Assembly (NCBI GenBank): GCA_026936335.1
Contig: JAPMXV010000075.1
Coordinates: 124,001 to 188,000, forward strand
Reading direction: 5' to 3'
Origin: Mantamonas sphyraenae STR306
Lineage: Eukaryota; Protista; CRuMs
Length of the DNA stretch: 64,000 nucleotides
In this document: piece after piece, positions 20,006 through 63,570 of the stretch
Layout of the letters: the number at the start of each line of letters is the position of its first letter
Numbering within the stretch: the first letter of the stretch is position 1
Notes under the pieces: model-generated
The model's database searches: none
What the model saw: only the letters and a program-made list of their open reading frames with translations
What the model was told of the DNA's origin: nothing
Program-made: the position numbers and the translations under genes

Positions 20006-20009
<4 letters not shown>

Positions 20010-20044
<35 letters not shown>
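20010..20044 (+). repeat. (CA)n microsatellite in the RhoGEF/GPCR divergent spacer
   Basis: About 17 consecutive CA units. Confidence 0.95.
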
Positions 20045-20045
<1 letters not shown>

Positions 20046-20079
20046 ACGTCACCGCGAACAGGAGCAATAGCGTGCAGCA

Positions 20080-25898: not shown

Positions 25899-26278
25899 AG
25901 GTGAACGAGAGAGGCTTCTTGGGACAATGTCCCGTTCCAACTCTGTCCGTGAATGAATCCTTTTCCCAGATCCGTCACCACGAGGCATCCCACCGGTGGT
26001 GAAGGGGAAATAATCCGCGTCCACAATGAGTTTTCAAGGACCTCTGGGATAGTGTGCAGGGTGCATCAGCTCGCTGACAAATCAGCGCGACTCAGCGCGG
26101 CTCGGGAGCGCTGCGCTGAATCTTTTTTCCCTTGCCAGCGATCGACCCACGGGCGGCTGCAACGTGACGCAGAACACTGCTGTAGGAAACTCACACAACA
26201 CAAGATCCTTCTCTCGTGTGCCATCGGAATGAAGATCTTGCCTTGCGCGCGACGGGCAATCGAAACGAGGTTTTTCCG

Positions 26279-44100: not shown

Positions 44101-47100
44101 TGGTTGGGTGACGGTGTGATGACACACGAGGAACAACACAACCGGACGGTGGCCATTGTGCCCGGGTCCGCGCACAACATCACAGCGCATGTAAACGCAA
44201 GTTCGTCGACAGTGTACACAGAGAGTGGCATGCGTGCACCCGCCGTCGCTCTGGCTGTGGTGGATGCTGTGGGAAACCTGGTGTGCTCGGGTGACGCCGT
44301 GCGCAATTACACACTGCGACTGGGCACCGAGACCGCCGCGCGGTGGTGGTTGACATGGCAACCGAGCAACAACCACTCAAACAGCTGCTGGCACACAGTG
44401 GACACCCTGGCTCTGGGTACGCCATTGCCGGTGGGTGGGTACAGCGTTGTCGTCGGCACGGATGGGTTGCATGACGCAGTGGTGCCCTTTGTTGTGAAAG
44501 AGGGCCCTGCGTCCGCCATCCAAGCCGTCCATGCGCATCTGGGCTTTGTCAAGAGTGCCACAACGACGCTGGTGCCACAGATGCGCTTCCAGGCTGTGGA
44601 TGTCCTTGGCCAAGGCACCGACGTCCCACCGCGCTCGTGGGCAGCTTCATCGCGGCTGCGGGTGGTTGCAGAGACCAGTGGACACGCCCTGCTGGCGGAT
44701 GTTGTGTTTGGCCAGTGGATCAACGTGACGGGTCTGACGTTGTCGTCGCCTGCGCATGGAGACCACTGTTTTGTGCTGCGCAATGCATCCTCATCCAGTG
44801 GCGCATTGTCGTCCAACACTGTGTGCATGACTGTGGTGTCGGGTGATGTGCACTCCTTTGTGATGAACCACACACAGGCTTTGCTGAGTCTTCGCAGTGG
44901 CACCTCTGTTCCGCTCACGCCGTTGCGGTTGTATGCACTGGATGCGTCGATGGCGTTGCCAGATGTGTCCGGTGGGATGAATGTGTCTGTCAACGTCACC
45001 GTGACGACACTGGGTGTCCATGGCATCCAGGAGGTGTTGCTGCCAGACAAGACATGGTTCGATCTGCACACGGTGCAATTGATCACCCCGCGTGCTGGAC
45101 AGTACATTGTACGCGCCGATGTGTTGTCGGACACTGCCCACACCCAGTCGCTGTCTGTGCCGCTGTCCATCCAGCCTGGAACCGCACACGCCATGGCTGT
45201 GGAGGACGCACCGTGGATGAAGGCAGTTGCGTCCTGGTGGCCGATGGCAGCGGTGCACGTGACGGTGCACGATGTGGCCATGAACACACTTGGATGTGAC
45301 CAACTGGCCATGGAAGGCAGCTGGACAGGCCAGTTGCAAGTGATGGGGACGGCGTCGGCGGCCGTGCCCGCAGATGTGCAGGTGACCAACGCGTGTCAGC
45401 TGCGAGTGAACAGCAGCCACAGCATGGACTTTGCATTCGAGAGCACATACACAGTGCGCGTGCGCGTGCAGTCGGCACAGCAGACCGTGGCCATGGACAC
45501 GCAGGTGCAAATGACGACAGAGTCGTGTGGCAAAGCAGGCAACGGGATGGTCAAGGGTGACACCGTGCGCGGACTGGCCACAAACCGCACCGGGTGTCGC
45601 TGTGATGGATCCAAGCGGTACGATCCCATGGCAGGGCGCTGTCTGGAGGACTATGCACTCACGTCGATGAGAGTCAACTTTGTGGAGGATGTGCCCGAGT
45701 TGACGGTGGAGGTGACATTGAAGGGAGCAGACGGGCAATCCTGTGCAGGCTTGAGTGTGGTGGCAGCGCGTGTGAGTGCAACAGGCACCGGCTCGGCGGC
45801 GTCGGACACACACAGCGTGGATGTGAACAACCCGGTGCTGTCTGGGTGCAGAGTGACGCTGGTGGCTCCGTCAGTGCCGTTGTGGTACGAAAGCACGTAT
45901 GCGGTGACGGCGGAGATGACGGTGTCGTCTGCGGCTGGGTTGACGATGATGAACGGTACCATGGCGCAAGGAGTGGTCACACGAAAGTGCAGGGACAAGG
46001 TCACGCACATGGTGTTCACCAACGACCCATCGGCTGGCGCTGCACGCGGATGTGCCTGCAGTGAGGGTTACATGATGCAGACGGCAGCTGGTCAGGCTCA
46101 GACCAGTTGCGTGGCGTGCGAAAAGGGCCAGTTCAAGGGCAAGGTGGGCAACGGCGCATGTTCTGTGTGTTCTGGCGGACGTACCACGGAAGCGGCAGGC
46201 GAGAACGACGCCAACAAGTGTCGATGCAAGCTGACAGAGTACTTTTCGGGTGTGGAGTGTTCCTCGTGCCCCAGCAACTTTGTGTGTTCCGGAAGCGACG
46301 TGGGTGAGATCCAGGTGCTGCCTGGATTTGTGGTGGATCCAAACAACCGCACACGTGCCATCACATGCCAACTGGCGGAAGCGTGCCAGGGTGGAAACAC
46401 ATGCACGACGGGCTACGACGGCCTGATGTGTTCCCAGTGCGCAGACGGGTGGGGCCGTGCGTCTGGCATGCGTTGCACAGAGTGTGCCGAGCCTTGGGTA
46501 AACTGGACCATGACCATTGTGGCCACGACTGCGTTTGTGGCCGTGGTGGCCTGGTTCATGCGACACTACATGAAAAAGGGAGCCAGCGGACCCGTGTCGT
46601 TGGCACAGTCGGTGGAAAGCGTGGAAGCCATCCCTCCCAAGCTGATCGCCAAACTGGTGCTGAACCACATGCAGATGGTGGGTCTGTTCTCGGTGGTGCG
46701 TGTGGAGTGGGGCGAACTGCTGCACGGGATGTTTGACACGGCGTCGACGGCGGGCATGGGTGTGGAGTTGGCACCCATCAGCTGCGCGTTGGATCACCCT
46801 CTGCATTACTATCGCTTCTACTGGTTTGCATCGTGGCCTTTGGTGGTGCTGGTGGTGTCGACGGTGATCCAGGTGGGTCTGTGGGTGCGTCGACGTGTGC
46901 AGAGCAACACGGGCAGCTGGAGGGAGCTGAAGCAGGCCATCCGGTACTACGCCCTTCCTCTGTCGCATGTGATGAACGCACTGTCCCACTTGATGATCCT
47001 GCGTGCGTTCATCGAGTATCTGGATTGCCAGCAGTTTGGGGACGAGTTGGTGATGCGTGCCGACACACGCATTGTGTGCACCTCGGACGAGTACCTGGCC

Positions 47101-47943
47101 AACATGGCGCCCATCCTGCTGTGGGGACTGTGGGAGGTGTTGGGCCATCCGTTGCTGGTGTTGCAGCGTCTGTGGGATCACAGTCGACATGGACGGCTGG
47201 AGGAGACTCACGTGTGGTCGTCGTACAACTTTTTCTACGCGTCGTACAGGCCCGATCGGTATCTGTACGAGTTTCTGATTCTGGGAAGGAAGGCCATGCT
47301 GGTGGTGGTGACGGTGGGATTCCGAGCAGAGCCGCTGCTGCAGCTGTACGCAGGATCGGTGGTGCTGCTGGTGGCCCTGGTGGTCCAGCAGTACCTGTCG
47401 CCGTATCGGTTCACGTGGCTGACGCGTTTGGAGTTTATCAGCTTGCTCGTGTCGCTGGGCACGCTGATGACAGGGATGCTGATGCTTGGGCGAAACGCAG
47501 GTTCGCAGACGGTGGAGAGCGCGACGGCGTTGTCAGTGGCGCCTTGGCTGGTGATGCTGGCCAACGTTGGGTTCATGGCTCTGTGTATATGGATGGGTGG
47601 CAAGGTGGGCGCGGAAAAGATGAAGGGGAAAGGCTCCAAGGTGATGGACGCATTGGGAAGCTTTCGGTCTGCCAGTAGGACGGGGAGGGCCAGTAGGGAG
47701 AGTGGAGGGGATACGAAGGACGATGTGGAGGATGAATGGGCGCTGGCGACGGTGGGATCGTCGGGTGTGAGCATGGCGCAGACGAGCATGATTGAGTTGA
47801 GCGAGCTGGGGGTGATGACGTTGTCGAGTGAGGGTGGGGAGGGTGTGGGTGAGGAGAGTGGGAGTGAGGAGGAGGAGGAGGACGGGGAAGAGGAGGAGGA
47901 GGAGAAGGAGGAGAAGGGAGAGACGACGGGAACAGCAGCTTGA
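35104..47943 (+). CDS. Giant (~4200 aa) surface protein: SBBP-like beta-propellers, Cys-rich TNFR/ephrin-like repeats, EGF, IPT/TIG, Ig-like stalk, ~7 TM domain, acidic tail; true start uncertain
   Basis: 12.8-kb open frame; signal-like LAIVALFVVQVVCW; propeller repeats WTIQYGGTGNDRSWGLAVDVDGALYVAGET; EGF CSNRGPCINSTCQCNPGFT; CTTGYDGLMCSQC; TM domain with FFYASYRPDRYLYEFLILGRK. Confidence 0.85.
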   Translation: MGPCDLRATSLGEGLCEREKYVHEHAAQLTHTPHVDCTSTQDAELECIHTWKSRGCIRKDEKYRRIEKEATTSESFRNPRRTRVSEFGDRESQTQYAGTSECVERRAGARQRVTSTNRWDRLGRASWTGRLAIVALFVVQVVCWRVDAGAVCPANTYNVTMGNSSVCTACPSGKYSSAGSPACYAPWVTQFGGTGEDAMYGALFVKDGVVAWGRTTGSINGVACPEPGVHTGYVTKLDFSGTVQWTTMINRGTGPDGVHDVDVDDAGNLYLAAFTFGGAYPGFAYKGHYDLVMMKLSPQGTQLWVDQFGSTGHDNPSSSLVTADGRVHLFGWVSGDVDGLASAGQDSIVRTYNQTGSVLSTYMWGTSATDSLANIFNARESSNGSVCAVGGTSGSFDGYTLSGASDAFFTVFQADGSNYTVQFGSTSTDTASGCTWSSDGEKLFVSGTTGGSIGSQVHVSGNDMFVAMFSGQNMVWVAQAGSQGDEFGNGLVFWDDTLLACGRTTGSMEVGHALGGLDVFCTYIRASDGSVLETMQSGSSGDNYAEAMDIDAGGNVLLSSSSVGSVDGNSALGNFDAVVWWRPFKCPAGRYGLFCTLCPMGTYSSEEGAMRCTQATCTTGQFQGVATGRTSLADVCFPMVKGVWTYTTARSGEAENAYAVHIDAASNTLLTGYTNGVIKAGNSSGNAQGIHDAWVRKAKPDGTALWSHQWGTTGHDAGHAVCSDDALDVYVGGYVSNNVGHITKLSGSTGSQLWQVSDLEASSFVTAVAEHKGVLFAGGDAHANQHGFTNPIPGRRYGWVGALSASNGTWLWFKPIRSEFDDAVTAIAVDTVDGTVFVGGVTGGIIGVTSGTTGKAAAFVGRYTSTGTLVYLVQTEATMTGRGLAYDRARGALYQSGYTNAAIPGAGGHFGADDVFVTRYSASTGVREWTIQYGGTGNDRSWGLAVDVDGALYVAGETSSNFDGYTNPVPGDGQMLLSKVAPDGVRLWTKIWGTIAYDGNYAVHVRNGYLYTAGWFNGPATDGCMTLLDHPPCPEGTYERLDATLDQPYRAACQPCDNDLCVSGSKALVASDLYGESFTILPSDVGGYEVFFNSAERFVIGRITSQNDEVFAITGNVTGLSADVFGILGSLDGDMILQIHRDEPSNKPIALVRVDNKGNVVWAREYYSFPYIANVRVLRFLTLLQLDNSNMLLSGQIKSTFNGVIADFLLWLDGYGVPIEARFGGTQSFFSVRLVDNSLGAQGFMENPPRVFVGTFDSSLGYISRRLSFCDFGAGGFSDVASAKRSNGNYVWVFRLAASPALIQIVELSSEQHRFVLRRQLDPVGILSSEVRTLVATADGGVILYSKVGLTTRILRLSPTWQTYNDTYYECACDISMLQPLENGDIILSFKVSGATSTKLMRVSSAFETGTSCENPFVVKSAGFVLTSFSHCGTHSVVGDFGYTKEGHGTASDSMLGATKAMVMDHTALDIRITTLNISQTCGGCDNHCSNRGPCINSTCQCNPGFTDRPTCTEGVLSGVTSTLNLVSTTPRNALPAIVSVQMTSRDAFGVLKTVGGYTSRFLNATAFHAATQTTLLSSSNATDLGTGAYTFPFLLDPPGEWTITVNVASASNPLAVDGSPTTNLTLSAYDCTAELSPNATSISSTSPARVVLNRATNMTIPTTAFCRLSLIRWVPVNVSCTNSSYALFGLPVNAPQPTATFPHLGTFQLCFSTDSGTTWHRQTSTSTHVTVIEHPYIADIQPTRLQPRGVPLTVTMTGSGFDTVDPAHDRVCFSPSHCVAPTIQSSTGLTCTLPAIPTPGNLTVALSLHSADNTPIPRPVYTPVDWMSIYETPTITSITPRTIPAHEGGRVRIDGLHFTTPSMVFKLHMLRSPGGPVLATNCTTPSPTTVTCDLPPVDAPALSYAQISLNDGVTFSGGETQQFLFIFDREAKCDNTVELEISRQLRQELSVAHYMPNVLRGVQPMSNSTWEAYNVTTITDDDFCCRFRPEDSETRCGAFSAARTQDMQVSYGTHAPVVTSETITAWNRPCDFLPRAYKVQHRMNASVPWQSMQGSRLCSSVSGERGSVSICVDMFAQVLASQFRIVVVNNTISGSAVDLASTQGYWIQEIQVRGVLVTQPYSLVGRFVTSGSNSTSVQSGAGTTWTDALHVQLTNVLGEDLAVAGVRVVLNIPAWNTSGVATTVANGSAVVPRISTPKPQLVGEVAARLSIHPQDAIQAPDLDTSHAVLMRIVPGVAHRVVATAKNTNGSDVASLMFNTQRSVVLTGTYTIGVSLRDFAGNTVGGYDTPTQRACNATYYGTVVSTATMSSGTATLSALSMEAPNPGDTTPLQVACAGVAHVDTVPVVVLTGLPTNLTLTNGTDLVQQTTTEATMQLSRLVITVVDDLGNASPAGTARNVSIALIRGGVTMQVWWRSIAGTSTHVDTGTLSLGSPLASGSYALEIATDGLHGTAAVVQVDVGSAVAFRVVSASQTHPTRATVALDTITLQPVDVLGQDTVRPPAQWQGSLTVSNNRNGVILRTGVPFTSPLHLANLSLSAPAHGVHTVNVSSTVYNSALNDTLVTLSITAGSVTHAQLNCTGAALPSSPSVQLSTCVVSLRDAAGQVPALNGSSAVQVSLSANSSMDPSTVLATLDSAEVDLTSVRLLSPLAGTVSLSATVRVDGQSVPVLPASVAQRVDAGPAANVTIVAVNGSTTLATQPGMRVPSVTLDVRDVVGNRLEVGQGSREAMVRLLRSHGAVVQTWNVTIDGVTSTGPLPLDEALPSDSYTLAVSSQGLYGANVAIDVVPGPAVELHALSESLGQLRTATQVALPPSAWVKRDSLGQVTSMGTIQTQVSIVYDGTNAAAVALAGWTADKNDTVLVVSGVQLASPVRGKHTLVLTDALSHFVANVTLVINPGNPVSSMLTCTEGFTTVASALHVPIACNVSLLDASESLAYIEAGRWVRIGLTIQPTSRVAPASRNISLVGGQHTLDLHSLFALEAPMARTNPYVMYVTIAWLGDGVMTHEEQHNRTVAIVPGSAHNITAHVNASSSTVYTESGMRAPAVALAVVDAVGNLVCSGDAVRNYTLRLGTETAARWWLTWQPSNNHSNSCWHTVDTLALGTPLPVGGYSVVVGTDGLHDAVVPFVVKEGPASAIQAVHAHLGFVKSATTTLVPQMRFQAVDVLGQGTDVPPRSWAASSRLRVVAETSGHALLADVVFGQWINVTGLTLSSPAHGDHCFVLRNASSSSGALSSNTVCMTVVSGDVHSFVMNHTQALLSLRSGTSVPLTPLRLYALDASMALPDVSGGMNVSVNVTVTTLGVHGIQEVLLPDKTWFDLHTVQLITPRAGQYIVRADVLSDTAHTQSLSVPLSIQPGTAHAMAVEDAPWMKAVASWWPMAAVHVTVHDVAMNTLGCDQLAMEGSWTGQLQVMGTASAAVPADVQVTNACQLRVNSSHSMDFAFESTYTVRVRVQSAQQTVAMDTQVQMTTESCGKAGNGMVKGDTVRGLATNRTGCRCDGSKRYDPMAGRCLEDYALTSMRVNFVEDVPELTVEVTLKGADGQSCAGLSVVAARVSATGTGSAASDTHSVDVNNPVLSGCRVTLVAPSVPLWYESTYAVTAEMTVSSAAGLTMMNGTMAQGVVTRKCRDKVTHMVFTNDPSAGAARGCACSEGYMMQTAAGQAQTSCVACEKGQFKGKVGNGACSVCSGGRTTEAAGENDANKCRCKLTEYFSGVECSSCPSNFVCSGSDVGEIQVLPGFVVDPNNRTRAITCQLAEACQGGNTCTTGYDGLMCSQCADGWGRASGMRCTECAEPWVNWTMTIVATTAFVAVVAWFMRHYMKKGASGPVSLAQSVESVEAIPPKLIAKLVLNHMQMVGLFSVVRVEWGELLHGMFDTASTAGMGVELAPISCALDHPLHYYRFYWFASWPLVVLVVSTVIQVGLWVRRRVQSNTGSWRELKQAIRYYALPLSHVMNALSHLMILRAFIEYLDCQQFGDELVMRADTRIVCTSDEYLANMAPILLWGLWEVLGHPLLVLQRLWDHSRHGRLEETHVWSSYNFFYASYRPDRYLYEFLILGRKAMLVVVTVGFRAEPLLQLYAGSVVLLVALVVQQYLSPYRFTWLTRLEFISLLVSLGTLMTGMLMLGRNAGSQTVESATALSVAPWLVMLANVGFMALCIWMGGKVGAEKMKGKGSKVMDALGSFRSASRTGRASRESGGDTKDDVEDEWALATVGSSGVSMAQTSMIELSELGVMTLSSEGGEGVGEESGSEEEEEDGEEEEEEKEEKGETTGTAA

Positions 47944-48489: not shown

Positions 48490-50513
48490 TCATGGTGTGG
48501 GCACAATGGTCATCTTGGAATTGTAGCAGCTGAACGCAGGGTACCACGTGCCGTCGTCAATGTTGTCGATGATGACGTCGACGTTGCCATTGCGGGAGAA
48601 GGTCAGCGTGTGAGCTGTGGTGTCCAGCTCCACCGTCACAATGTCGCCTTGGTTGTAGCGCGTGTTGATGTCGGTGGAACTTCCATTCTTGTACGTGTAC
48701 CCACCGGAGCTGAATGTGTACCAGCTGTGGCTTTCCTGCTTGGCCCCTGTGAGCCATGCGGTGTCAGTACTTTCCATGTGGTGTCTGTGAGATGTGATGA
48801 CTTACCAACAAAGGTGCTTCTGAGATCACTGCTGCTGTTGCAGATGCCGATCATAATCTGGGACAATCGGTCCACTCGCGCGCTCCATCGCTGTCCCGAG
48901 CGCAGCTTCTTCTTGCCAATCCATGTTGCCCAGGAGTTGCTACTGACATCCAGACTGTCCTCCGTGAATGTTCCCCGGCTTTGGTCGACCCGGTCCCAGT
49001 CCAGACCGATGGTTGCATTCTCTCGCTCCGTGTCGCAAACTGGTTCCTGACCCTTGCTTATGCGCAGGGCATCTACCAGACCATTCGTCAACACCTCCAA
49101 CTCCACATGCCGCGTGTCCCACTCTCCGTCCACCTTCATCCCTTCCAGACGTTCCGGACTCAGCAGCCCAAACCGCACACACCCATACATCCGCCTCTCC
49201 CACCCTTCCTCCTCCTCCTCCCCATCATGTTCCTCCACATACCTCTCCACAATCTCCAGCACGTCGTCCTCACTCTTCACCTTGATCCTATCGGCACTCA
49301 GAATCAGCTCCGCCACCCACACCGGCAGCCCGCTCATGTTCACACGCCCATCCTCCCGCAACACCTCCAGCTTCCCCGCAATCGTCACACACAATCCTTT
49401 CACCACTTCCTCACTCGCACCTGTTGCCAGTGCCACCTTCAGCAATCCCATCTCCTCGTCGTGCCTAACGCCCTCCAACAATCCACTCAGGTACTCCACA
49501 TCCTCTGCCTCCACCATCTCCTCCACATCCACACTGTCCAAATACCCACCCACCACCCGTGCCAGCTTTCTCTTGTCCACTCCCTCCTCCCCATGCTGCT
49601 CCAACGCCACCTTGACCATTGCCACAAACACACAGCCCCGCATAAACCCAAACGCCCCACCACCCACCGCATCTGCCACCTTGCCCCACTCCTTTGCCAC
49701 CCGCAACACACTTGCATGGTACACATTGGAGTGCACCACCTCGGCGACACCCATGGCCCCCACGAGACTGCCCCCACGACACATCCTCACCAGTGTCTCT
49801 GCATCATGCTCCTGTCCCACCCACTGCATCACATGCTCCGTCAGCATGGGCATCAGCCAGAACTGTGCCACGGCCAACAGACTGTAACACAGCTCCACGT
49901 TGGTCACAGGCAGGGTACCGCCGTAGCACCACCCCACCGCCACTTCCATTGCACGCAACACACCCACACTCTGTGTGCCCCGCTTCACCACCATTCGAAA
50001 CATCCCTCCCCCCTGTCCATCCTCCCTGCTGTGTTCCAACACCGCTGCCCCCGACGACGCTGCTGCCCCGTCCTCAACCTCCAGCAGATACCGCCACAGT
50101 CCGCTGTGCAGACACAGAAACGAACGGTGTGCACGAAGCACCACGTCCTTTCCTCCCAGATCGTCTCCATCTGGTGTCCCGTCATTGTCCATTCGCTGGT
50201 GTGAGCGTGGTTCAATCTCTTCCTTCCCCACTCCAAACTCACCCGCCCCATCCAGTCCTTCCAGCACAATCTCCACATCGGTACACAGACCACTCTTGTA
50301 CATGTCATGAAACAGCGTGCGCACTGCTGGTGACGTGTCGGGTCCTGCCTTGCCCTGCAGCGGCGAAAGAGGGCCGTACGCCTTTGTGCGCTCCGACTGC
50401 AGGTAATGGTCAGGTCCATCTGTGGACAGACCATGCACACTGCGCATCCCATGGTTGGTGTTGCTGCTGCTGTCTGCCTTGCCCTTGCCCTTGCCCCGTG
50501 CGATTGTGCTCAT
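48490..50513 (-). CDS. BTB/POZ-BACK-like-SPRY protein; complement(join(48490..48746,48806..50513)), ~654 aa
   Basis: BTB TDVEIVL..LRAHRSFLCLHSGLWR; BACK-like LSADRIKVKSEDDVLEIVERY..CVRFGLLS; SPRY YNQGDIVTVELDTTAHTLTFSRNG..WYPAFS. A 59-nt intron GTAAGT..ACTGAC..CAG joins the two ORFs. Confidence 0.85.
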
Positions 50514-51178
50514 TGTTCCCCCCACTGCGTGTGTGTTTCGTGTTGTTGTGTCACACCCGTCGCATTGCACACCCCATCCATCAACCACCACCAAGAACGC
50601 AGATCTGAAACGGGCAGTGGCGGTGTAGTTGCCTTTGTTCACTCGATTGGCAATGTGCAAGCAAAGGGGGGTCGACACCACTCCTTTCTTCCTCGGACGC
50701 ATCCGTTTCCTTCCCTGCTGGTGGCACTGATGGGCAAAGACAGGACGGTGTGTGTGTCACTCTGGATATTGGAACAACGTCATGGAGGTGTGCGTGGAGG
50801 GTTGTAAAGTGGGGAGGAAATGTGGCTCTTTCATGTGTGGTGGTGGTGGTGGATGGATGGAGGAAGAGGGTCAGAAGCAGGAGGCACGATGGAACGCCGT
50901 CCTACTGTAGGTTGTGGCGTAGTGGGGGGTGAATGTAGGTGGAAGATCGGGTGTGTGTGTTGTCGACGCGGAATGTGAAGGCGGCGAAGAAGAGGCTGAG
51001 CGCTCCTTGTCCTCTATGCGCGAGTGCAACAACGCATATTGCATACAGACAGTTTTGAACAGTCATCAGGTAGGGAGGGGCGGGGGTATCGGGGACTTGT
51101 GCCCGTGTATAGATGGGATAGAGAGAGAGTCACGGAGGAATCAGGAGAGGCTGACAATCATGGGATATCGCAGGAAAT

Positions 51179-53229
51179 ATGGGCTTAAACGTACATCAGT
51201 GGTTGGAATTGTTGCAGAGCGGGGACCATGGGCGGATTGTGGAAGCTTTGGAGGATCAGGGAACGGTGAGTAGGCGGAAAGAAATCGGGAGGGCGTTTTG
51301 GGTGAGCGTGACGTTGATCGTCGCACCAGAAGAAGGGAAGGAGGGATGGGAGTAGGGTGGATGTGATGGTGAGTACGCAGGGTGGAACGTGTGTTGACAC
51401 GGCACACACAGAAATTGGACCTTGCACGTGGGGACCTGGGAGACAAAGAAGCAGCGGCACTCGCGCGGGCACTGGCTCAGAACAGCAGCTTGCAGACCCT
51501 GGACCTCAACAACAACACCATCGGGGCAGAAGGCGCCGCAGCACTGGGGCAGGCACTAAGTGAGAACAGCGGCTTGCAGACACTGATTCTCTGGGACAAC
51601 GGCCTCGGGGACGAAGGAGCAGCAGCGCTTGGGCAGGGACTGATTGATAACACCGCCTTGCAGACGCTGGACCTTGAGAACAACAGCATCGGGGACAAAG
51701 GCGCAAGAGCAATGGGGCAGGCACTGAGTAGGAACAGCTGCTTGCAGACACTGAACCTGGGAATCAACTGCATCGGGCCAGAAGGCGCAGCAGCACTGAC
51801 GCAGGCACTGTGTGAGAACACCACCTTGCAGACGCTGGACCTCGGAAACAACAGCATTGGGGCAGAAGGCGCAGCAGCGCTGACGCCGGCACTGAGTGAG
51901 AACACCGGCTTGCAGACTCTGTACCTTAGTAGCAACAGCATCGGCGACAAAGGAGCAGCCGCACTGGCGCAGGGACTGAGGGAGAACCAGAACTTGCAGG
52001 CACTGAGCCTCTTCTACAACAGCGTCGGAGCAGAAGGAGCGGCAGCACTGGGGCAGGCTCTGAGTATGAACAGCAGCTTGCAGACACTGAACCTCGGCTG
52101 GAACAGTTTCGGGGCGGAAGGCGCAGCAGCACTGGCGCAGGCACTGAGGGAGAACCAGAGCTTGCACACACTCATCCTCAGCTCGTGCGGCACTGGTGCA
52201 GAGGGAGCAGCAGCACTGGGGCAGGCGCTGAGGGAGAACAACAGTTTGCAGACTCTGAATTTTGGAAACAACAGTATCGGTGACGAAGGGGCCGCAGCAC
52301 TGGGACAGGCTCTGAGTAGGAACAGCAGCTTGCGGACACTGTACCTCAGCCTTAACAGCATCGAGGACGAAGGAGCAGCAGCACTGGGACAGGCACTGAG
52401 TGAGAACAGCTGCTTGCAGAAAATAGACCTCGCAAACAACAGCATCGAGGCAGAAGGCGCAGTAGCACTGGCGCAGGGTCTGAGCAAGAACAGCAGCTTG
52501 CAGACACTGAACCTCAGTACCAACACCATCAGGGCAGAAGGAGCAAAAGCGCTGGCGCAGGCACTGGGTGAGAACAGCACCTTGCAGATGCTGAGTCTCA
52601 GCTTCAATCCTACCGGGGACGAAGGAGCAGTAGCACTGGCTCAGGCATTGAGTGAGAGCAACAGCTTGCAGACACTTGACCTCGGGAACACCAGCATCAG
52701 GACAGAAGGTGCAGCAGCGCTTGCTCAGGCGATGGAGGGCAATCGCTCCTGCTGGAAGATTGAAGGCGTTCGCAATGACGCGTTGCAGTCGCTGTTGGAG
52801 AGGAACATGGAGAATCACGTGGAGTTTGTGGAGTGTGGGGATGTGGAGACGATGAGAGAGTTGTGGGAATGGGGTGTGCCTGTGGACACGTTTGCAGGGG
52901 ATGAGGGGGAGGAGACTGCGCTGGAGAGGGCTGTGAAGGGTGGGGATGAGACGATTGTGGATGTGTTGCGGGCGTGGGGTGCGACGCCGAGGATGGAAAC
53001 GGTGGAGATTGTGAGGAAGGGAGGGTGGAGGAAGGCGTGGCATTGGATTGGATGGGGTGGGCAGGTGGATGAGGCGATGGAGGTGGCGCTGGTGATGAAT
53101 GGGGAGGAGAGGGAGGCGATGTTTGAATGTGGAGGGATGGAGGCGTATGAACCGACTGCACAGTGGATGACACTGCCGGATGAGGTGATGGAGAGGGTGA
53201 TTGGGTGGATGGGGAGGGGTGGGTGGTGA
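51179..53229 (+). CDS. LRR-ankyrin-F-box-like paralogue A, ~16 RI-type LRRs; join(51179..51265,51412..53229), ~634 aa
   Basis: Exon 1 MGLNVHQWLELLQSGDH; phase-0 intron; 28-aa LRRs; ankyrin-like ETALERAVKGGDETIVDVLRAWGA; ends WMTLPDEVMERVIGWMG. Confidence 0.88.
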
Positions 53230-55316
53230 TGGCGTCGCGGAATGAAGAAGTTGGTTGAGTGTGTGGTTGTGAGGGAAATGGGCAAGCAATGAAAACCAGC
53301 ATGAGGAGTAAAAGGCGGTGCTACACACCCGTGTTTGTTGTTCACCACCTGTACAGACAGGACCATCGGGGTCCCAGTAATTACGCTCCAAGCACAACCG
53401 GCGAGTCCTCTTGCTTGGTAGTGTCGTCACTGCACATGCGGAGAAGGTTCCTCATTTGGACACCCCACACACCATGCGCGTTCACTCGTGTTCCATAGCG
53501 GGATTGTCCTCTTCTGAGTCTGCCCTCCACCGTCCTCCGTCCCCGTTGTTGGGTGAGGGAGGGTCGTTGGGATGGGATGGGGGGTTCACCCACCCTCCAC
53601 CATACCCCTTCCACGTACCCAGTCCCATCTTCTTCGTTGTCATTGTCGTTGTGGTTGTGGTTGTGATTGCAACTTGGCGCGTTGCACGTCGACGTGGCCA
53701 CCTGCTTCCTGATGCTGCTACGGTTGTCCCCCTTTCATCCTCCAACCAGCGCCTCCATGCTGCGTCCGCTTCTGGCTTGCCAAAGCCCATGTCCGATGGA
53801 CACTGGAAGGGATCCCACAGAACATGTCCCGGGGGGGAGGGGGGGTTCCTGGAGACGCGCCCACACACTCGCACCCTCCTCACGTCCACCACGCAAACAC
53901 CCTGTGTTTCTCTTCATGGGTGGATGCACACGTTCTGCGGTTTGTCCATCCCTTTGTTCTCCCTCTGTGGCGACTTCTCTCTCCTTGGATCGGGGCGAGC
54001 AGCGCCGTTTTCACGCGCGTACTTTCCACGTGTCACATACACGCCTGTGCGTGCGTGGCTTCCCTTTGGCTTCGGACTGGGTTGACCTAGCCTTGTCCCA
54101 ACTGGTCAAGAGGTTGTTCTCGCGTGCGTGCGAGTTGTGGCTGCAGCCACAGAGGCGACTTGAGGGTGCGTCTGAACCGCGAGAACAAGCTGGAGCGCAC
54201 GGGCCGCCAAAAGCGTGACGTGTGCCACGGAGGACATCCGAGATACGGCTGGGGATGATGCCATGGGCCCCTCAGACGTGGAATTGGTGCATCTGTCCGG
54301 TTCCAAGGTGTGCTAAGGCGCCCATGGTGTTGAACGTGGCCTCGGTTGCCGGGCGTGTCGACGGGCGCCTTGGTCGCCGTCTGCCAGAATCCCATCACAG
54401 AGGCAGGGAGGACATTCGAACCGACTTTGACGACAGTACGCCACCGCACGTGTGTTTGTGCATGTGTTGGTGCAACGTCATTCTCACTACTGTTCCACGA
54501 TGTTGGAGGGGGGCGGGAACTCCGGTGGCTGAAAACGCGCACCTCGGCGGGTGGGTGTGTGCATGTGTCCCCAGGACCACAACTTCAGTGAGGGTACACA
54601 CACATACACGGGTCTCCCAATGGACGAAGCTGGTGATGTGTGTTCCCATCTGCGACCATTTCAAGTGCGATGTGAAACGCCTCGCTTTTCGGACCCACCA
54701 GTGGATGATTGAGAACGTGTGGGTGGCAGAGGCGCCACCAGTGCGGTCGCGACGGATGAACGGGTCATGCCAGGCGAAGCTTTGGTCTCTGTTGAGTCTC
54801 ACGTGCAGCTCCGGGATTTTCCTGACTCGAAGAGGTGGAGAAAAAAGAACGCCGTTCACATTTTGGGAACGGATGATGGACCCCGAACATTATGAGTCAA
54901 CCCGAAGGTAGCAGCCAAAAGCGCAACTCAACGGAGGAGGAGGACCAACGTGTCAGAGAAGAATTTTCCTGCCGAGTCTATCACGTGTGTCATGGGTGAC
55001 ATGGTGGACATGGATGCACAGGAGAGAATTCAAGATTCCCGGAGGAGTGGGAGTTGGGAGTGTGCAGCGTACGGGGAGAGGATACCGGGCGGGAGAAACG
55101 GAGCGTGGCGGTGAAGGCGCCGAACGACGCAACGCATCTTGGAATTGGTGACATCGAACAGGAATCTCAGGGTAAGTGAGGTGGCTGGGTGGAGAACACA
55201 CGGCTGGTGGGCTGTTGAGGGGAGGAATGGAAGGGGGCGGTCGCTGTGGGAGGGAGAGTGGGCGGGTGGTGCCCACGACGCTCACAACGGAGAGCAGACA
55301 CAGATTGGGTACACAG

Positions 55317-56376
55317 ATGAATACCGATTGGAATGATCTGCTGAAGAACGGGGACCATGCACAGATTTGTAGTGCACTGGAGGCAGCGGGAGAGGTAGGC
55401 TGGGACCGGAACACAAGGAAGAGCGGGAAAGAAGTGGGTGAAGGGCAACAGTGGAGTGTGTGCTGACACGACACGTGGGCCACAGCGGCTGCGCATTAAT
55501 TGCATGTATCTAGGGGACGACGAGGCAGTAGCGCTTGCCAAGGCGCTGGGGAAGAACACCAGATTGCGGACACTCGACCTGGGCTTCAACAACATTGAGG
55601 ACGAAGGAGCAACAGCGCTGGGACAGGCACTGAGTGAGAACAGCAGCTTGCAGAGACTGGACCTCAGGGCAAACAGCATCGGGGCAGCAGGAGCAGGAGC
55701 AGTGGCGCACGGACTGAGTGCGAACCGCAGCTTGCAGACGCTGTACCTCTTCAGGAATTCGATCGGGGCAGCAGGAGCAGCAGCACTGGGGCAGGGTCTG
55801 AGTGAGAACAGCAGCTTGCAGACACTGCACCTCGGCTGGAACAACATCGGGGACAAAGGTGCAGCAGCACTTGCTCAGGCGATAAAGGGCAATCGGTCGT
55901 GCTGGAAGATCACCGGCGTTCGCAATGACGCGTTACAGTCGCTGTTGGAGAGGAACATGGAGAATCACGTGGAGTTTGTGGGGTGTGGGGATGTGGAGAC
56001 GATGAGAGAGTTGTGGGAGTGGGGTGTGCCTGTGGACACATTTGCGGGAGAGGGGGGGACGGAGACTGCGCTGGAGAGAGGGGTGAAGGGAGGGGACGAG
56101 GGGTTGGTTGAGGTGTTGCGGGGATGGGGTGCGAAGCCGATGATGGAAACGGTGGAGTTGGTGAGGAAGGAGGGGTGGAGGAAGGCGTGGCATTGGATTG
56201 GGTGGGGTGGACAGGTGGATGAGGCGATGGAGGTGGGGTTGGTGATGAACGGGGAGGAGAGGGAGGTGATGTTTGAGTGTGGAGGGATGGAGGCGTATGA
56301 ACCGACTGCACAGTGGATGACACTGCCAGACGAGGTGATGGAGAGGGTGATTGGGTGGGTGGGGAGGGGATGGTGA
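55317..56376 (+). CDS. LRR-ankyrin-F-box-like paralogue B, ~5 LRRs; join(55317..55394,55486..56376), ~322 aa
   Basis: Exon 1 MNTDWNDLLKNGDH; same intron position; same C-terminal module. Confidence 0.86.
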
Positions 56377-56399
56377 GTGGGGAGGGGAGGTGCGGAGAG

Positions 56400-56990
56400 G
56401 CGAATGTAGGTGGACAGTTTTTGAACAGTGATATGTGTGTGTGTGTGAGGTGGACGCGGGATGTGAAGGCGGCGACGAAGAGGCTGAGCGCTCCTTGTCC
56501 TCTATGCGCGGGTACAACAACGCATATTGCATACAGACAGTTTTGAACAGTCATCAGGTAGGGAGGGGCGGGGGCATCGGGGACTTGTGCCCGTGTATAG
56601 ATGGGATAGAGAGATAGTAACGAGAGGAATCAGGAGAGGCTGACAATCATGGGATACAGGAAATATGGGCTTAAACGTACATCAGTGGTTGGAATTGTTG
56701 CAGAGCGGGGACCATGGGCGGATTGTAGAAGCTTTGGAGGATCAGGGAACGGTGAGTTGGCGGAAAGAAATCGGGAGGGAGTTTTGGGTGAGCGTGACGT
56801 TGATCGTCGCACAGGGAAGGAGGGATGGGTGTAGGGTGGATGTGATGGTGTATACGCAAGATGGAACGTGTGTTGACACGGCACACACAGAAATTGGACC
56901 TTGCACGTGGGGACCTGGGAGGCAAAGAAGCGGTGGCACTTGCGCGGGCACTAGCTCAGAACAGCAGCTTGCAGACCCTGGACCTCGCAG
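56400..56990 (+). repeat. Recent duplicate of 50930-51510 (upstream region, exon 1, intron and first LRRs of paralogues A and C)
   Basis: Near-identical non-coding sequence, e.g. GAAGAGGCTGAGCGCTCCTTGTCCTCTATGCGCG..CATATTGCATACAGACAGTTTTGAACAGTCATCAGG in both places. Confidence 0.92.
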
Positions 56991-58789
56991 ACAACCCCAT
57001 CGGGGTAAAAGGCGCAACAGCACTTGGGAAGGCACTGAGGGAGAACAGCGGCTTGCAGACACTGGACCTCAGCCACAACAGCATCGGGGCAAAAGGCGCA
57101 GCAGCATTGGGGCAAGCACTGTGTGAGAACATCAGCCTGCAGACGCTGGTCCTCAAAAACAACAGCATCGGGAAAGAAGGAGCAGCAGCACTGGGGCAAG
57201 GACTGAGTGAGAACAGTACCTTGCAGACACTGAACCTCGGAAAAAACAGCCTCGGGGCAGAAGGCGCAGCAGCACTGGCAAAGGTACTGGGTGAGAGCAG
57301 TAGCTTGGAGACACTGAATCTCGACAGCAACAGGATCGGGGCAGAAGGAGCAGCAGCCCTGGGGCAGGCACTGAGGGAGAACCAGAGCTTGCAGACACTG
57401 GGTCTCACCAAGAACAGCATCGGGGCAGAAGGCGCAGCCGCGCTGGGGCAGGCACTGAGGGAGAACCAGAGCTTGCAGACACTGGGTCTCACCAAGAACA
57501 GCATCGGGGCAGAAGGCGCAGCCGCGCTGGGGCAGGCATTGAGTGAGAACAGCAGCTTGCAGAAACTGGGTATCAGCGACAACAGCATCGGGGCAGAAGG
57601 TGCAGGCGCGCTGGGGCAGGCACTGAGTGAGAACAGCAGCGTGCAGAATCTGGATATCAGCCGCAACGGCATCGGTGGAGAAGGAGCAAAAGCTCTGGCG
57701 CGGGCACTGAGTGAGAAAAACAGCTTGCAGTTTCTGGAGCTCTCTAGCAACAGGATCGGGGCAGACGGAGCAGCAGCACTGGCGCAGGCACTGGCTGAGA
57801 GCCGCAGCTTGCAGATACTGGACCTCGGCTGGAACAGCATCGGGACAGAAGGTGCAACCGCACTTGGGCAGGCACTGAGTGAGAACAACAGCTTGCATAC
57901 ACTGATCCTCAGCCGCAACAGCATCGGGGCAGAAGGAGCCGCAGCACTGGCGCAGGCACTGAGTGAGAACAGCAGCTTGCAGACACTGAACCTCAGTACC
58001 AACACCATCAAGGCAGAAGGAGCAGCAGCACTGGGGCAGGCACTTTGTGAGAACCAGAGCTTGCAGAGACTGAACCTCGGAAACAACAGCATCTTGGCAG
58101 AAGGAGCCGCAGCACTGGCCCAGGGACTGGGGAAGAGCAGCAGCTTGCAGACCCTGAACCTTAGTACCAACAGCATCAAGGCAGAAGGAGCAGCAGCACT
58201 GGGGCAGGCACTTTGTGAGAACCAGAGCTTGCAGACACTTTACATCAACTTCAACAGCATCGCGGACAAAGGAACAGCAGCACTGGCCTTGGCGATGGAA
58301 GTCAATCGGTCGTGCTGGAGGATCGATGTCGTTGGCAATGGAGCTTTGCGGTCGCTGCTGGAAAGGAACATGGAGAATCACGTGGAGTTTGTGGAGTGTG
58401 GGGATGTGGAGAAGATGAGAGAGTTGAGGGAGTGGGGTGTGCCTGTGGACACATTTGCGGGAGAGGGGGGGACGGAGACTGCGCTGGAGAGAGCTGTGAA
58501 GGGTGGGGATGAGGAGATTGTGGAAGTGTTGCGGGCATGGGGAGCGAAGCCGAGGATGAAAACGGTGGAGATGGTGAGGAAGGAAGGGTGGAGGAAGGCG
58601 TGGCATTGGATTGGATGGGGTGGGCAGGTGGATGAGGCGATGGAGGTGGCGTTGGTGATGAATGGGGAGGAGAGGGAGGCGATGTTTGAATGTGGTGGGA
58701 TGGAGGCGTATGAACCGACTGCACAGTGGATGACACTGCCGGATGAGGTGATGGAGAGGGTGATTGGGTGGGTGGGGAAAGATGTGTGA
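56665..58789 (+). CDS. LRR-ankyrin-F-box-like paralogue C, ~17 LRRs; join(56665..56751,56891..58789), ~661 aa
   Basis: Exon 1 translation identical to paralogue A; same intron position; same C-terminal module. Confidence 0.88.
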
Positions 58790-60393
58790 ATTGTTCCGTT
58801 CATTCAAGGCGGTGGTGTTTGGAGGAGGAGGGCAAGGGATTGGAGAGGCGTTGAAGAGTGGAATGAATGGAAGGTGATGTGGGGTGATGCGGCCAATGAG
58901 GGTGTGCAGTGTCGTTGGGTTGGAGTTTGGGCAGTCAAGGGATCGTGTGGGAGAAGGGAGTGACGGCATGGGTGACAATGGCGCTGATGGTGGGTTGCAC
59001 CTGCCTGGAGATGAGGTTGTGGCATGGTGATGGGAACGAGGGAGGCCAACACACAGCCGCTAACAGAGCCTCTGGTCGCTTTGACAGTCGTCTCTGGGTG
59101 TTCCTTCTCTGTGAAGTGGATACCATGGGACTGTCGCTGATGATGCATTGGCCTTTGGTGACACCGTGGCTGTATGGATGACACCAGCGAAGTAGAAACT
59201 CCGCCTGTGGGAGGATCAACGCACACAAAACCTGCCCTGTGTCGGCGCACAGCCCTCGTTGGATCCTAAGACCAAGCTTGTAGACGAGTCCACGGGAAAC
59301 ACACGCACAGACGCAGTTTCGTGTTTGGGGTGATTTTGGTGGAGAGCGGCTGGTTGTTGGCCATGTCGACAATGGTCGGAAAGTGGCGAAAAGTGGAATG
59401 AGGGTCATTGGGGTGTGGTTGATGTGTGGAGGGCAGAGACCGAGGCTGAGGGCATGGGACGGCCTGTGGTGCGAGCAGGGGGGCGGCAAAGGTGCGGGTA
59501 CTCGGCCACCGCCTGAAACCAGCTGCGTGAGTTTCTGCGACACTGCTCACGAATGCACAGCCTGACTGTGGTAAAAGTGTGCTTGGGAAGTGTGTGGGTG
59601 ACTACACACAGGTGCAAGAGGTGGGCGTGGTGATCGAGGGGGTGTGTGGTCCGTGGGAGGGCGGTTTGTGGCGCAGGAAGGCGGCGAGGTGCGGCTGGGC
59701 TGGCAAGGCGACAAGCAAAAACGACGCCACGACCACCACCAGGCACATTTTTCATCGAATTTGGGGAACTTGGCGCAGAGGTGGAATGGGAGGATGAGGC
59801 CTGTTGCGTGTGTGGGAGGAGGATGTGTCTGCGACAAAATCACCTCCGGGTGGCAAGGGGAGAGGTCATGGGGCCGCAGTGCAGCAAGGTGGGCGATGAC
59901 GCAGACTCAAGAGAAGGAAGCAGGTGGAGAGTCAGCAGTGTCATACGCAGCAGATGCCAGTGGGGTGGGAGAGCGTGCGCTTGTCAAAGCACAACAAACA
60001 CAACTGACAAAAGGAGATGGACGAACAAGGTGAGTTGACGACGTAGTGGGGTCGATGTGTTGTTTGCCATTGGTTGGTGGGTGTGTGTTGGGACAGCGTG
60101 CAACCAGCTCTTCCGTTTTGGCGTGAGGAAGGAGGCCGGTTGGCGCGTGAGAACCTGGTGGCGAGGATCGTCGTGCTGCCCCCCAACGCACCATAGCAGG
60201 CAACGCTTGGGGTGCACAGAGTACTTGGCCAGTGCAGCAGCAACATGCGCCGCAGCTAACAACCGGCACATGCTCACAGATTCAGACTCTGAAGGTATGG
60301 AGACCATGCAGAGGAGAAAGGGAGCTGGGCAGAGGGAAAGTTGGTGCACACACGCTCACAACGGGCAAAGCAGGCGAAGTGAACATCCTGAAA

Positions 60394-62138
60394 ATGGATG
60401 ATGATGACTGGGCGGCGTTGCTGCGGAGTGGGGATCATGAACGGATTTGTCGGGCACTGGAGGCAGAGGGAGAGGTGGGTTGTGACTGGGACGCGTGGCC
60501 GTGTTGCACGTCAAGAAGCGGATAAAGGGAAACTATGGAGTGTGTGTACTGACACGTGGAACACAGTGTTTGTGTATTCGTAGCCAGTTTCTGGGTGACA
60601 ATGAGGCAGCCGCACTGGCGCAGGCACTGTGTGGGAAGTGCAGCTTGCAGACACTGGACCTCAGTGACAACAGTATTGGGGACGAAGGAGCAGCAGCACT
60701 GGCGCAGGCACTGAGTGAGAACACCAGCTTGCAGACACTGAAGCTTGGTTCCGGCAGCATCGGGAACTTAGGAACAACGGCACTTGCGCAGGCACTGATT
60801 GAGAACAGCAGCTTGAAGACTCTGCAAATCAGCACCAACAGCATCGAGGACGAAGGAGCATCCGCACTGGGTCAGGCATTGTGTGAGAACAACAGCTTGC
60901 AGACTCTGGATCTCAGCCACAGCAGCATCGGTGGCAAAGGAGCGGCAGCAGTGTTCCAGGCCCTGAGTTTGAACAGCAGCTTGCAGACGCTGATCATCAG
61001 CTGGGATGGCATCGAGGCAGAAGGAGACGCAGCACTGGGGCAGGCTCTGAGTGAGAACAGCAGCTTGCTGACATTGGACCTCATCGACGACAGCATTGGG
61101 GACGATGGAGCAGCAGCACTGGCTCAGGGACTGAGTGCGAACAGCAGCTTGCAAACTCTATACGTCGGCCACAACTGCATCGGGGACGGAGGAGCAGCAG
61201 CACTGGCTCAGGGACTGAGTGAGAACACCAGCTTGCAGACACTGGACCTCATCAACAACTGCATCGGGGACGATGGAGCAGCAGCACTTGCTCGAGCATT
61301 GAGTACGAGCAGCAGCTTGCAAACACTATACCTCTGGAAAAACAGCATCGGGGACGATGGAGCAGCAGCACTGGGGCAGGCACTGAGTGAGAACAGCAGC
61401 TTGCAGGCTCTGGACCTCAACAGCAACAGTATCGGGGCAGAAGGAGCAGTAGCACTGGGGCAGGCACTGAGTGAGAACAGTAGCTTGCAGACTGTGGAAC
61501 TCAGCTACAACAAAATCGGGGTCGGAGGAGCAATAGCACTGGCGCAGGCACTCAGTGAGAACAGGAGCTTGCAGAAACTGCACCTCAGAGACAACAGCAT
61601 TGGTGGAGAAGGAGCAGCGGCACTGGCGGAGGCGATGCGTGGCAATCGGTCGTGCTGGAGCATCGTTTATGACCACGATCGGGCTTATCAGTCGTTGTTG
61701 GAGAGAAATAGGAAACATCACGCAGAGTTTGTGGAGTGTGGGGATGCGGTGAGGATGGCTGAATTGAGGAAGTGGGGTGTGCCTGTGGACACCTTTGCAG
61801 GGGAGAGTGGGAAGGAAACTGCGCTGGAGCGAGCAGTGAAGCGAGGGGACGAGAGGATTGTGGAGGTGTTGCGAGCATGGGGTGCGACGCCGAGGACGAA
61901 AACGGTGGAGATGGTGAGGGAGGAAGGGTGGAGGAAGGCGTGGCATTGGATTGGGTGGAGAGGACAGGTGGATGAGGCGATGGAGGTGGCATTGGTGATG
62001 AATGCGGAGGAGAGGGAGGTGATGTTTGAGTGTGGAGGGATGGAGGAGTATGTGGAGGAAGGAGGGTGGGAAGGGTGGGTGACACTGCCAGATGAGGTGA
62101 TGGAGAGGGTGATTGGGTGGGTCGTGGTGGCTGGGTGA
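60394..62138 (+). CDS. LRR-ankyrin-F-box-like paralogue D, ~13 LRRs; join(60394..60474,60567..62138), ~550 aa
   Basis: Exon 1 MDDDDWAALLRSGDH; same intron position; ends WVTLPDEVMERVIGWVV. Confidence 0.86.
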
Positions 62139-62213
62139 GGTGGGGAATGAACACCACTGGTTTGTGTCTGCGCAAAGTCTTCCCAGCATCCTTGCGCACC
62201 CAAACCAACCACC

Positions 62214-63570
62214 ATGGACTGGAATCACCTGCTGGATTCCCCCTCCGACCCATTGTCTATTGAAGAGGCACTGGCACACGCTGGGAAAGTACGCTGAATC
62301 GCATTCCCCCGTTGCTGCTGCGCAAGGACCTTGCCTTACTCGCCTCCACCCCACCCCCGCTCTCAAGTCGCTCTCACTGCGGCAATGGCAGCTCACAGAC
62401 ACCCAAATCGCCTCTTTGGCATCATTTGGCATTGCCGGAAACACCACCCTCCAAGTCCTGGACCTCACACGGAGTGGAGTAGGCCCTCACGGCGCAACCG
62501 CCCTTGCCAAGGCCCTCACCGCCAACACAACCGTCCACACGCTAAAGTTGAACAGCAATGTCATCGAAAGCAAAGGGTGCATTGCAATCATCGAGTCGTT
62601 GAACCACAACAACTCTCTGCTCTCCCTCAGTCTCCTGAAAACCAACCTCGATGACGAGTCGTTCCGTCTGGATGCAAACAACACGCTGAACGAGCTGAAC
62701 GTCGCCTTCAACACCGTTGGCGACGCCTTTGCCGCCTCGTTGGCCAGTTGACTTTCTGAAAACACTTCTCTGTGCATCTTGACCCTCACCCACAACCAAA
62801 TCAGCTGCCAAGGCGCAGAGGCCCTCGCTGCAGCGCTCACACACAACGTCAGGCTGACAGACCTTTCACTTGCCCACAACCACATCGAACGCAAAGGCGC
62901 TGTTGCCTTGGCCACTGCTCTGTTGGCAAATAGCACCCTGCAGTCTCTGAATCTCTACCACAACAGCATCGATGACGACGGAGCCATCGCCATCGCCACA
63001 GCCCTGCATTCAAACAGCACTCTGCAGATTCTTGATTTGGCCAAGAATCCCATCAACGACTTGGGGCAAACGGAATTGACGACTGCTTTGACCAACAACA
63101 CGACTTGCTTGCGCATCGACTGCTGCAAGAGGGTGTTCAACTTGACACAAGCGAGGAAGTTCACAACAGCTGCACAGCGTGGCGATATTGCCACCATGGG
63201 CGAGTTGAGAGAGTGGGGTGTCGCTGTGGACGCTCGGGCAGGCGAGCACGGGCAAACCGCCTTGCAGCTGGCCATGGAAGCCAGACAGGATGCTGTGGTT
63301 GCACAACTGAGGCGTTGGGGGGCACAGGCGACGTATTCATTCACAAAGTCGATCGGGGGTTCAAACTGGGAATGGCGGGAACCGTGGCATTGGGTGTTGG
63401 GCACCGTGGTGCAAGACACCGCATTGGAAGTCGTCCTGGCCATGAACGCTGAGGAGCGGGATGTGATGTTTGAAGCAGGAGGGATGGAAGGGTATGTTCC
63501 CACGGCCCTGTGGAGCACCCTTCCAGACGAGGTGATGGAACGTGTGGCAACGTGGATCGGCCATCTGTGA
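62214..63570 (+). pseudogene. Divergent LRR-ankyrin-F-box-like paralogue E, ~9 LRRs, with in-frame TGA at 62749-62751; join(62214..62288,62368..63570)
   Basis: Exon 1 MDWNHLLDS; the two ORFs are in the same frame, separated only by TGA (ASLAS*LSENTSL); clear ankyrin GQTALQLAMEARQDAVVAQLRRWGA; ends WSTLPDEVMERVATWIG. Confidence 0.7.

Follow-up and report, generated by a model that had tools for sequence, protein, structure and literature searches.

Recognition of viruses and intracellular bacteria by single-celled eukaryotes is largely an open question, to which a tandem gene array in the protist Mantamonas sphyraenae STR306 may be relevant. The array lies in a stretch of 64,000 nucleotides (GenBank assembly GCA_026936335.1, contig JAPMXV010000075.1, positions 124,001 to 188,000; hereafter the window), where five plus-strand paralogues, genes A–E (51179 to 63570), encode leucine-rich repeats (LRRs) followed by a tail of two ankyrin repeats and a terminal helix that resembles the first helix of an F-box. 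An original prediction, made by a model from the letters of the sequence, had taken these genes, together with an adjacent BTB-SPRY gene, for a diversifying ubiquitin-ligase immune locus. Here we ask what the array encodes, and place at about even the chances that its products are lineage-specific, diversifying cytosolic substrate adaptors of SCF (Skp1–Cullin-1) ligases.

Architecture of the array

Each gene consists of a short exon 1, a phase-0 intron at a shared position and one large exon (Table 1). Introns were inferred from reading frame and splice signals, while sequence searches and alignments were made exon by exon, the two pieces of gene E being taken separately. Exon 1 is 25–29 codons long, follows the common pattern W-x-x-L-L...D...I...A-L...G and has eight residues that are invariant in all five genes. 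The GT..AG introns of A, B, C, D and E measure 146, 91, 139, 92 and 79 nt, and those of A–D display a CTGAC or TTGAC branch point 14–19 nt ahead of the CAG acceptor. The tails of the other genes are 43–87% identical to that of A. Five co-oriented paralogues with a common exon 1, an intron at the same position and a conserved C-terminal module are therefore present as originally described, and a recount of the 28-aa repeats, including the first capping repeat, returned the same numbers for A–E (16, 5, 17, 13 and 9).

A Pfam scan of all exon-2 products detected no NACHT, NB-ARC or ROC(-COR) domain, and exon 1 contributes only 25–29 aa, in agreement with the earlier statement that these proteins are not NLRs. 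Because neither a signal peptide nor a hydrophobic or membrane segment was found in the array proteins, they should be cytosolic.

Although all five genes could be located, gene E is broken. It carries an in-frame TGA (62749-62751), a fourth repeat shortened to 23 aa and an ambiguous or atypical splice acceptor (AAG at 62367 or CAG at 62391), all of which had been missed in the earlier reading. Stop-codon reassignment was ruled out, since TGA occurs 0 times as a sense codon in the window's long (training) open reading frames (ORFs), and so was an intron excising the TGA, whose donor would be non-consensus and whose removal would cost a beta-strand. When compared to the other tails, that of E shows nonsynonymous and synonymous divergences (dN, dS) of ~0.5 and ~2, in which purifying selection is still visible, so that the loss would be recent unless it reflects a sequencing error. 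Gene E is thus a probable pseudogene or sequencing error, and only four array genes are probably intact.

Variability is concentrated on the concave face of the LRRs

The repeats belong to the 28-residue NLRC3/ribonuclease inhibitor (RI) type. Their best sequence matches are coral NACHT-LRR proteins, mammalian NLRC3 and Mortierellaceae LRR proteins (~45–52% identity), and the fold matches of two structure models, which cover the sequence without exon 1, include NOD2, NLRP1 and ribonuclease inhibitor. Positions 5, 7 and 8 of the repeat correspond to the exposed x residues in the strand LxxLxLxxN; in known LRR structures, these residues usually form the ligand-binding face. In the 47 full repeats of genes A–D, entropy at these positions is 2.8–3.4 bits and the helix core is almost fixed; 41 distinct triplets occur at positions 5, 7 and 8 among the 47 repeats.

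By counting methods, dN at codons 5, 7 and 8 is 2.3 times dS elsewhere (bootstrap 1.9–2.8). A codon model with shared dS yielded omega values of 2.1–4.9 at these codons, 0.2–0.3 in the core and 0.6–0.9 at other positions (likelihood ratio test, p<1e-5 in all four settings), and per-site omega estimates single out positions 5, 7 and 8 alone. The pattern is also seen in the 15 closest independent repeat pairs, picked without using the variable codons: of 45 variable codons, 36 encode different amino acids and 0 differ only silently, versus 73 and 49, respectively, of the 375 other codons. Codons 4, 6 and 9, which lie between or beside the variable ones, show background synonymous diversity, which argues against a regional mutation hotspot.

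Two considerations weigh on the other side. The result depends on the model, since allowing codons 5, 7 and 8 their own synonymous rate brings dN/dS to 1.0 or 0.5, and recombination biases tree-based tests and can inflate omega. We consider diversifying selection on three concave-face positions per repeat to be likely, if not proven. The variable recognition surface on a constant tail that had been proposed for these proteins is recovered, with change concentrated at three concave-face positions and purifying selection on the tail (see below).

Recombination in the array

Between genes A and C, identity reaches 99% in exon 1 and 95% in the intron and is 92% both upstream and in the tail (tail range 88–98%), versus ~70–82% over most of the LRR block, so that the coding repeats diverge more than the neutral intron. 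The paralogues are mosaic, because the tail of B is as near to that of A (91%) as is the tail of C, yet its exon 1 is as far from A's (71%) as is that of D (69%). Gene C contains exact tracts of 96 nt and 62 nt, from recent one- and two-unit duplications, and the two halves of a repeat share their nearest neighbour in only 3 of the 47 repeats. These unit duplications and mosaic paralogues show that recombination is ongoing. VLR-like donor cassettes were also looked for, and no free LRR cassette was found outside the five genes within the 64-kb window; there is hence no sign of VLR-like somatic assembly, and germ-line unequal crossing-over and conversion suffice.

The conserved tail and its terminal helix

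The tail runs from an LRR C-cap through two ankyrin repeats and ~55 residues of predicted helices to a final helix, where the protein ends. The ankyrin part of the original prediction holds, both repeats being supported by hidden Markov model (HMM) matches to PDB and library entries and by fold search. The final helix, W-x-T-L-P-D-E-V-M-E-R-V-x-x-W, has 10 consecutive or nearly consecutive residues that are invariant in all five genes, with the stop 3–5 residues past the last Trp. With a dN/dS of about 0.35 (by part 0.34, 0.37 for the 55 residues preceding the motif and 0.30, the lowest, for the terminal motif), the tail is under purifying selection.

The suggested coupling to Skp1 through an F-box was upheld in part. 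Indeed, the alignment of the final helix with helix 1 of three F-boxes (those of a giant-virus F-box/ankyrin protein, a Wolbachia-phage PRANC protein and Ralstonia GALA1) needs no gaps, a resemblance recognized by eye; the helix-1 signature (hydrophobic-x-x-L-P-x-E-hydrophobic, amphipathic) is present and invariant in the array, and a scan of unrelated fetched proteins, 403,000 residues in all, gave 0 matches to the motif pattern. There is also a precedent: two papers on poxviral ANK/F-box proteins describe truncated C-terminal F-boxes that bind Skp1 mostly via helix 1 contacts, and report that cowpox CP77 binds Skp1/Cul1 through a 13-residue motif that is essentially helix 1 alone (PMC4353913, PMC8695901). 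The part that did not stand is the complete domain. Of the three-helix, 40–50-residue F-box only helix 1 is present, helices 2 and 3 being absent, and Pfam returned no match to PF00646 or PF12937. Exon 1 lacks an L-P-x-E motif; the motif sits C-terminally, with no N-terminal F-box ahead of the LRRs.

A series of results speaks against an F-box. Profiles for F-box, PRANC and SOCS were unmatched in Pfam, NCBIfam, PDB sequence and fold searches. When true F-boxes were cut to 22 aa, Pfam weakly detected two of three (E=0.003 and 0.09) and missed the array motif, although the true GALA F-box helix was missed as well. A real PRANC could not be aligned with the tail (hhalign E=0.34), confidence in the predicted structure is low over the C-terminal region (pLDDT<50), and a word-based search, covering 0.55–1.75 times the query length, found no homologue of the tail. 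A degenerate W..LPDE pattern, run on viral contigs, picked out three protein families and fell within an F-box in just one of them, the other matches being acetyltransferases and a small phage protein. The motif is thus not F-box-specific; as a candidate F-box, we rate its chances of functioning as one a little better than even. Regarding a SOCS box, no Pfam match was obtained and a BC-box consensus was not seen by inspection, by which short motifs are easily missed. The off-target acetyltransferase is a near-identical 196-aa hexapeptide-repeat protein carried by viral contigs L014-L019 (~35% GC).

Search for relatives

HMMER searches against 1.84 billion representatives revealed no tail homologue among the top 150 matches, below which weak matches to the last 70 residues may rank; these 150 were multi-ankyrin proteins, which matched mainly via their ankyrin part. 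No relatives of the tail were detected in viral, metagenome, prokaryotic-genome or phage collections, and LRR-only relatives exist, none of which was found with the tail. The post-ankyrin half of the tail is thus without a detected homologue in the collections searched. The order of RI-type LRRs, two ankyrin repeats and a terminal F-box-like helix had no match in database proteins or in the literature searched, whose coverage was incomplete; the ingredients and the evolutionary pattern are each known, and the combined architecture appears to be new.

A separate observation concerns P0245, a protein from Logan run DRR438522 (L001:487-2832), in which two LRR blocks each end in an R-N helix followed by an I-P-x-E-V helix. 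Its alignment to the array tail is not significant (hhalign E=0.14), and as a lead it could possibly represent an ankyrin-less version of the tail, from a broader group of protist LRR proteins that end in an F-box-like helix.

A possible mechanism and its alternatives

If the array proteins are SCF adaptors, the N-terminal LRR horseshoe would bind a target via its concave beta-sheet, on which each repeat presents three variable residues, the two ankyrin repeats and helical linker would serve as a constant spacer, and the single C-terminal helix would dock on Skp1, leading to ubiquitination of the bound target. New specificities would arise in the germ line through gain and loss of repeats, exchange between paralogues, selected point changes and gene birth and death, as in the decay of E. 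Likely targets would be fast-changing proteins, such as those of viruses or intracellular bacteria. The fuller proposal, in which the array would be the anti-pathogen ubiquitin-ligase repertoire of a deep-branching protist, of undescribed LRR–ankyrin–single-helix-F-box architecture, a host counterpart of the poxviral C-terminal F-box adaptors that tags giant-virus or intracellular-bacterial proteins, is tentative, and we hold it to be on the doubtful side. Diversification is well supported, whereas the ligase link hangs on one short motif and the immune role on analogy with the nematode F-box and MATH-BTB families and the LRR expansions of Ectocarpus and Tetrahymena, with five copies in one window.

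The strongest challenge comes from the tail. The proteins could be cytosolic binders that diversify but have no F-box in their tail, which would instead recruit another partner (another cullin adaptor, an autophagy or a signalling protein), dimerise or cap the fold, so that the proteins would act as sensors or as stoichiometric inhibitors like ribonuclease inhibitor. The uniformly negative F-box profile tests are in line with this possibility, as are the occurrence of the motif in acetyltransferases and a small phage protein, the near-equal conservation of the preceding 55 residues (dN/dS 0.37), which have no homologue, and the proximity of the LRR fold to NOD2, NLRP1 and ribonuclease inhibitor. 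However, PRANC proteins are known to be laid out as an ankyrin part, a linker and a terminal L-P-x-E helix, no other part of the tail is as constrained as the motif, and Pfam misses the true GALA F-box helix too. We therefore see a tail of other function as possible but rather unlikely. 

Less probable still are two further explanations. Under near-neutral turnover, redundant or weakly constrained LRRs would be reshaped by unequal crossing-over and gene conversion, their exposed positions being unconstrained and no arms race taking place. The dN/dS of 1.0 or 0.5 obtained at codons 5, 7 and 8 with their own synonymous rate would fit, as would one broken copy and the scarcity of repeat halves with a common nearest neighbour (3 of 47), a mark of pervasive recombination by which tree-based tests are biased. 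But the excess is codon-specific, exposed convex positions having omega values of 0.6–0.9, the flanking codons 4, 6 and 9 have normal synonymous diversity, and in the closest pairs differences affect 80% of the variable codons and always change the amino acid; we regard this explanation as unlikely. Finally, adaptors could have evolved for endogenous conflict or for offence, directed at proteins of transposons or other selfish elements, serving self/non-self or mating recognition, or acting as effectors in prey or host cells. The nearest functional precedents with such domain logic are in fact pathogen effectors (PMC4209131), but the array proteins lack a signal peptide or membrane segment, their genes have spliceosomal introns and host-like codon usage, and tail relatives are absent from the viral, bacterial and metagenome contigs searched, which makes this origin improbable.

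Comparison with known systems

Among known systems, the PRANC proteins (PF09372, poxviral and rickettsial) share with the array a repeat solenoid placed first, ankyrin repeats, a helical linker and an F-box-like helix at the extreme C-terminus. They differ in that the array is host-encoded with introns, has LRRs as its variable binder and only two ankyrin repeats, and shows no PRANC sequence match. A C-terminal truncated F-box has been described as very rare in eukaryotes (PMC9414399). The F-box and MATH-BTB families of nematodes and plants likewise form birth-and-death clusters with a fast-evolving substrate-binding part and a conserved cullin-coupling part; in nematodes, this pairing of a variable binder with a conserved cullin-binding part underlies a hypothesis of defence by degradation (PMC4334554). 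Those families, however, carry a full N-terminal F-box and count hundreds of members, whereas the array has a single C-terminal helix and five copies in one window.

Ralstonia GALA/RipG, Neochlamydia NEX1 and Protochlamydia PEX1 combine GAxALA-type LRRs with a ligase-recruiting motif in tandem expansions (PMC4209131), but are bacterial, secreted, lack ankyrin repeats and have an N-terminal F-box or BTB domain, and their repeats are only ~33% identical to those of the array. In FBXL and GALA proteins the F-box is N-terminal to the LRRs, the reverse of the order seen here. The Ectocarpus LRR-ROCO and Tetrahymena group II/III LRR genes, proposed to encode immune receptors (PMC3341825, PMC6564038), resemble the array in LRR expansion, variable repeat number and selection on concave-face residues; there, one repeat occupies one exon and is shuffled as such, whereas the array genes keep all their repeats within one exon, lack ROC-COR and end in an ankyrin/F-box-like tail. 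NLRs of the NLRC3/NOD2 type provide the 28-residue RI-type repeats and the best sequence and fold matches, but the array has no NACHT or death-fold domain and its LRRs are N-terminal. On the features tested, the array would thus work like an ANK/F-box or FBXL adaptor, yet it lies outside the canonical F-box, PRANC, FBXL/GALA, NLR, ROCO and VLR families.

With its four probably intact genes, the array offers small cytosolic candidates whose variable surface is mapped. If the last helix binds Skp1, the truncated C-terminal F-box would extend to a protist host gene family, and protists would join nematodes and plants in 'immunity by adaptor diversification'; otherwise, the tail would be an uncharacterised conserved module without a detected homologue. 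The LRR scaffold, fixed except for three positions per repeat, also amounts to a natural library of repeat-protein binders.

The BTB-BACK-SPRY neighbour and genomic setting

The BTB-SPRY gene reported beside the array is real, single-copy in the window and divergently transcribed, with 665 bp between its start (50513) and the ATG of gene A (51179). Pfam identified BTB (E=0.017; partial, divergent), BACK (E=5e-5) and SPRY (E=2e-8), the latter requiring one intron. The layout of BTB-BACK Cullin-3 adaptors, with BTB, BACK and then a substrate-binding domain, is thus present. BTB-BACK proteins are Cullin-3 adaptors, and F-box and BTB adaptors use different cullins; by its architecture, the product is plausibly a Cullin-3 adaptor. 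Its inclusion in a joint ubiquitin-ligase locus is unsupported, because only adjacency ties it to the array, and a functional link was set aside: intergenic gaps of a few hundred bases are ordinary in the window, the cullin would be another one, and the segment duplicated from A to C, which includes the 228 bp upstream of A, begins 438 bp from the BTB start and did not copy the BTB gene.

Table 1. Coordinates of the array genes and of the divergent neighbour, in window positions (nt)
Feature	Position	Strand	Remarks
BTB-BACK-SPRY exon 2: C-terminal SPRY part, stop	48490..48746	-	Pfam SPRY E=2.4e-8; phase-1 junction
BTB-BACK-SPRY intron, 59 nt, GTAAGT..CAG, CTGAC branch point	48747..48805	-	inferred from frame
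BTB-BACK-SPRY exon 1: divergent BTB with insertions, BACK, SPRY start	48806..50513	-	codon score positive
Upstream segment of A	50951..51178	+	copied upstream of C (56439-56664); blastn 93.8% over 551 nt including exon 1 and intron
Gene A exon 1, putative N-cap helices	51179..51265	+	
Gene A intron, phase 0	51266..51411	+	
Gene A LRR solenoid, 16 repeats	51412..52749	+	
Gene A tail: LRR C-cap, two ankyrin repeats, helical linker, F-box-helix-1-like motif (~53164-53208), stop	52750..53229	+	
Gene B exon 1	55317..55394	+	
Gene B exon 2: 5 LRRs and tail	55486..56376	+	
Upstream segment of C, copy of A's	56439..56664	+	
Gene C exon 1; protein identical to A exon 1	56665..56751	+	
Gene C exon 2: 17 LRRs and tail; recent internal duplications	56891..58789	+	
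Gene D exon 1	60394..60474	+	
Gene D exon 2: 13 LRRs and tail	60567..62138	+	
Gene E exon 1	62214..62288	+	begins 75 bp past D stop
Gene E exon 2: 9 LRRs (one of 23 aa), in-frame TGA 62749-62751, divergent tail	62368..63570	+	

Between the BTB-SPRY gene and gene A lies a 20-nt inverted repeat (50574-50593 / 50841-50860; 95% complementary, spacing 247 nt), which is of low complexity and possibly of chance origin. No hidden genes were found in the A/B and C/D gaps, where they were looked for; on the minus strand between A and B, a 136-aa ORF (53485-53892) with a borderline codon score and no Pfam match is possibly a small or decayed gene.

The window as a whole is gene-dense, intron-poor eukaryotic DNA of ~58% GC, which also carries genes for MSH6, a RhoGEF, a polycystin channel and a sterol-sensing protein. 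Two genes away from the array, a single-exon plus-strand ORF of ~4,200 aa (35104-47943) encodes a giant surface receptor that combines propeller-like repeats with IPT/TIG domains, cysteine-rich domains of the ephrin-receptor-like type and a C-terminus that passes the membrane several times. A 1,507-aa protein at 26216-30739 (+), possibly a second LRR receptor, has many LRRs of another type, unrelated to the array repeats, and a TRP-like multi-pass membrane region. The Patched/NPC1-like sterol-sensing protein and the polycystin-2-like channel are encoded at 22045-24183 (+) and 32164-34281 (+), respectively. MSH6 (834-4019, +) shares no more than 44–46% identity with any database protein, has an unusual composition and sits on a long branch whose position was not resolvable in a quick, unfinished tree; by this gene the organism, which is not human, appears to belong to a deep eukaryotic lineage that is unsampled. 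The RhoGEF (11195-20122, -; 2,975 aa) contains a WW domain and displays an extreme purine bias over a long region (~16000-19000).

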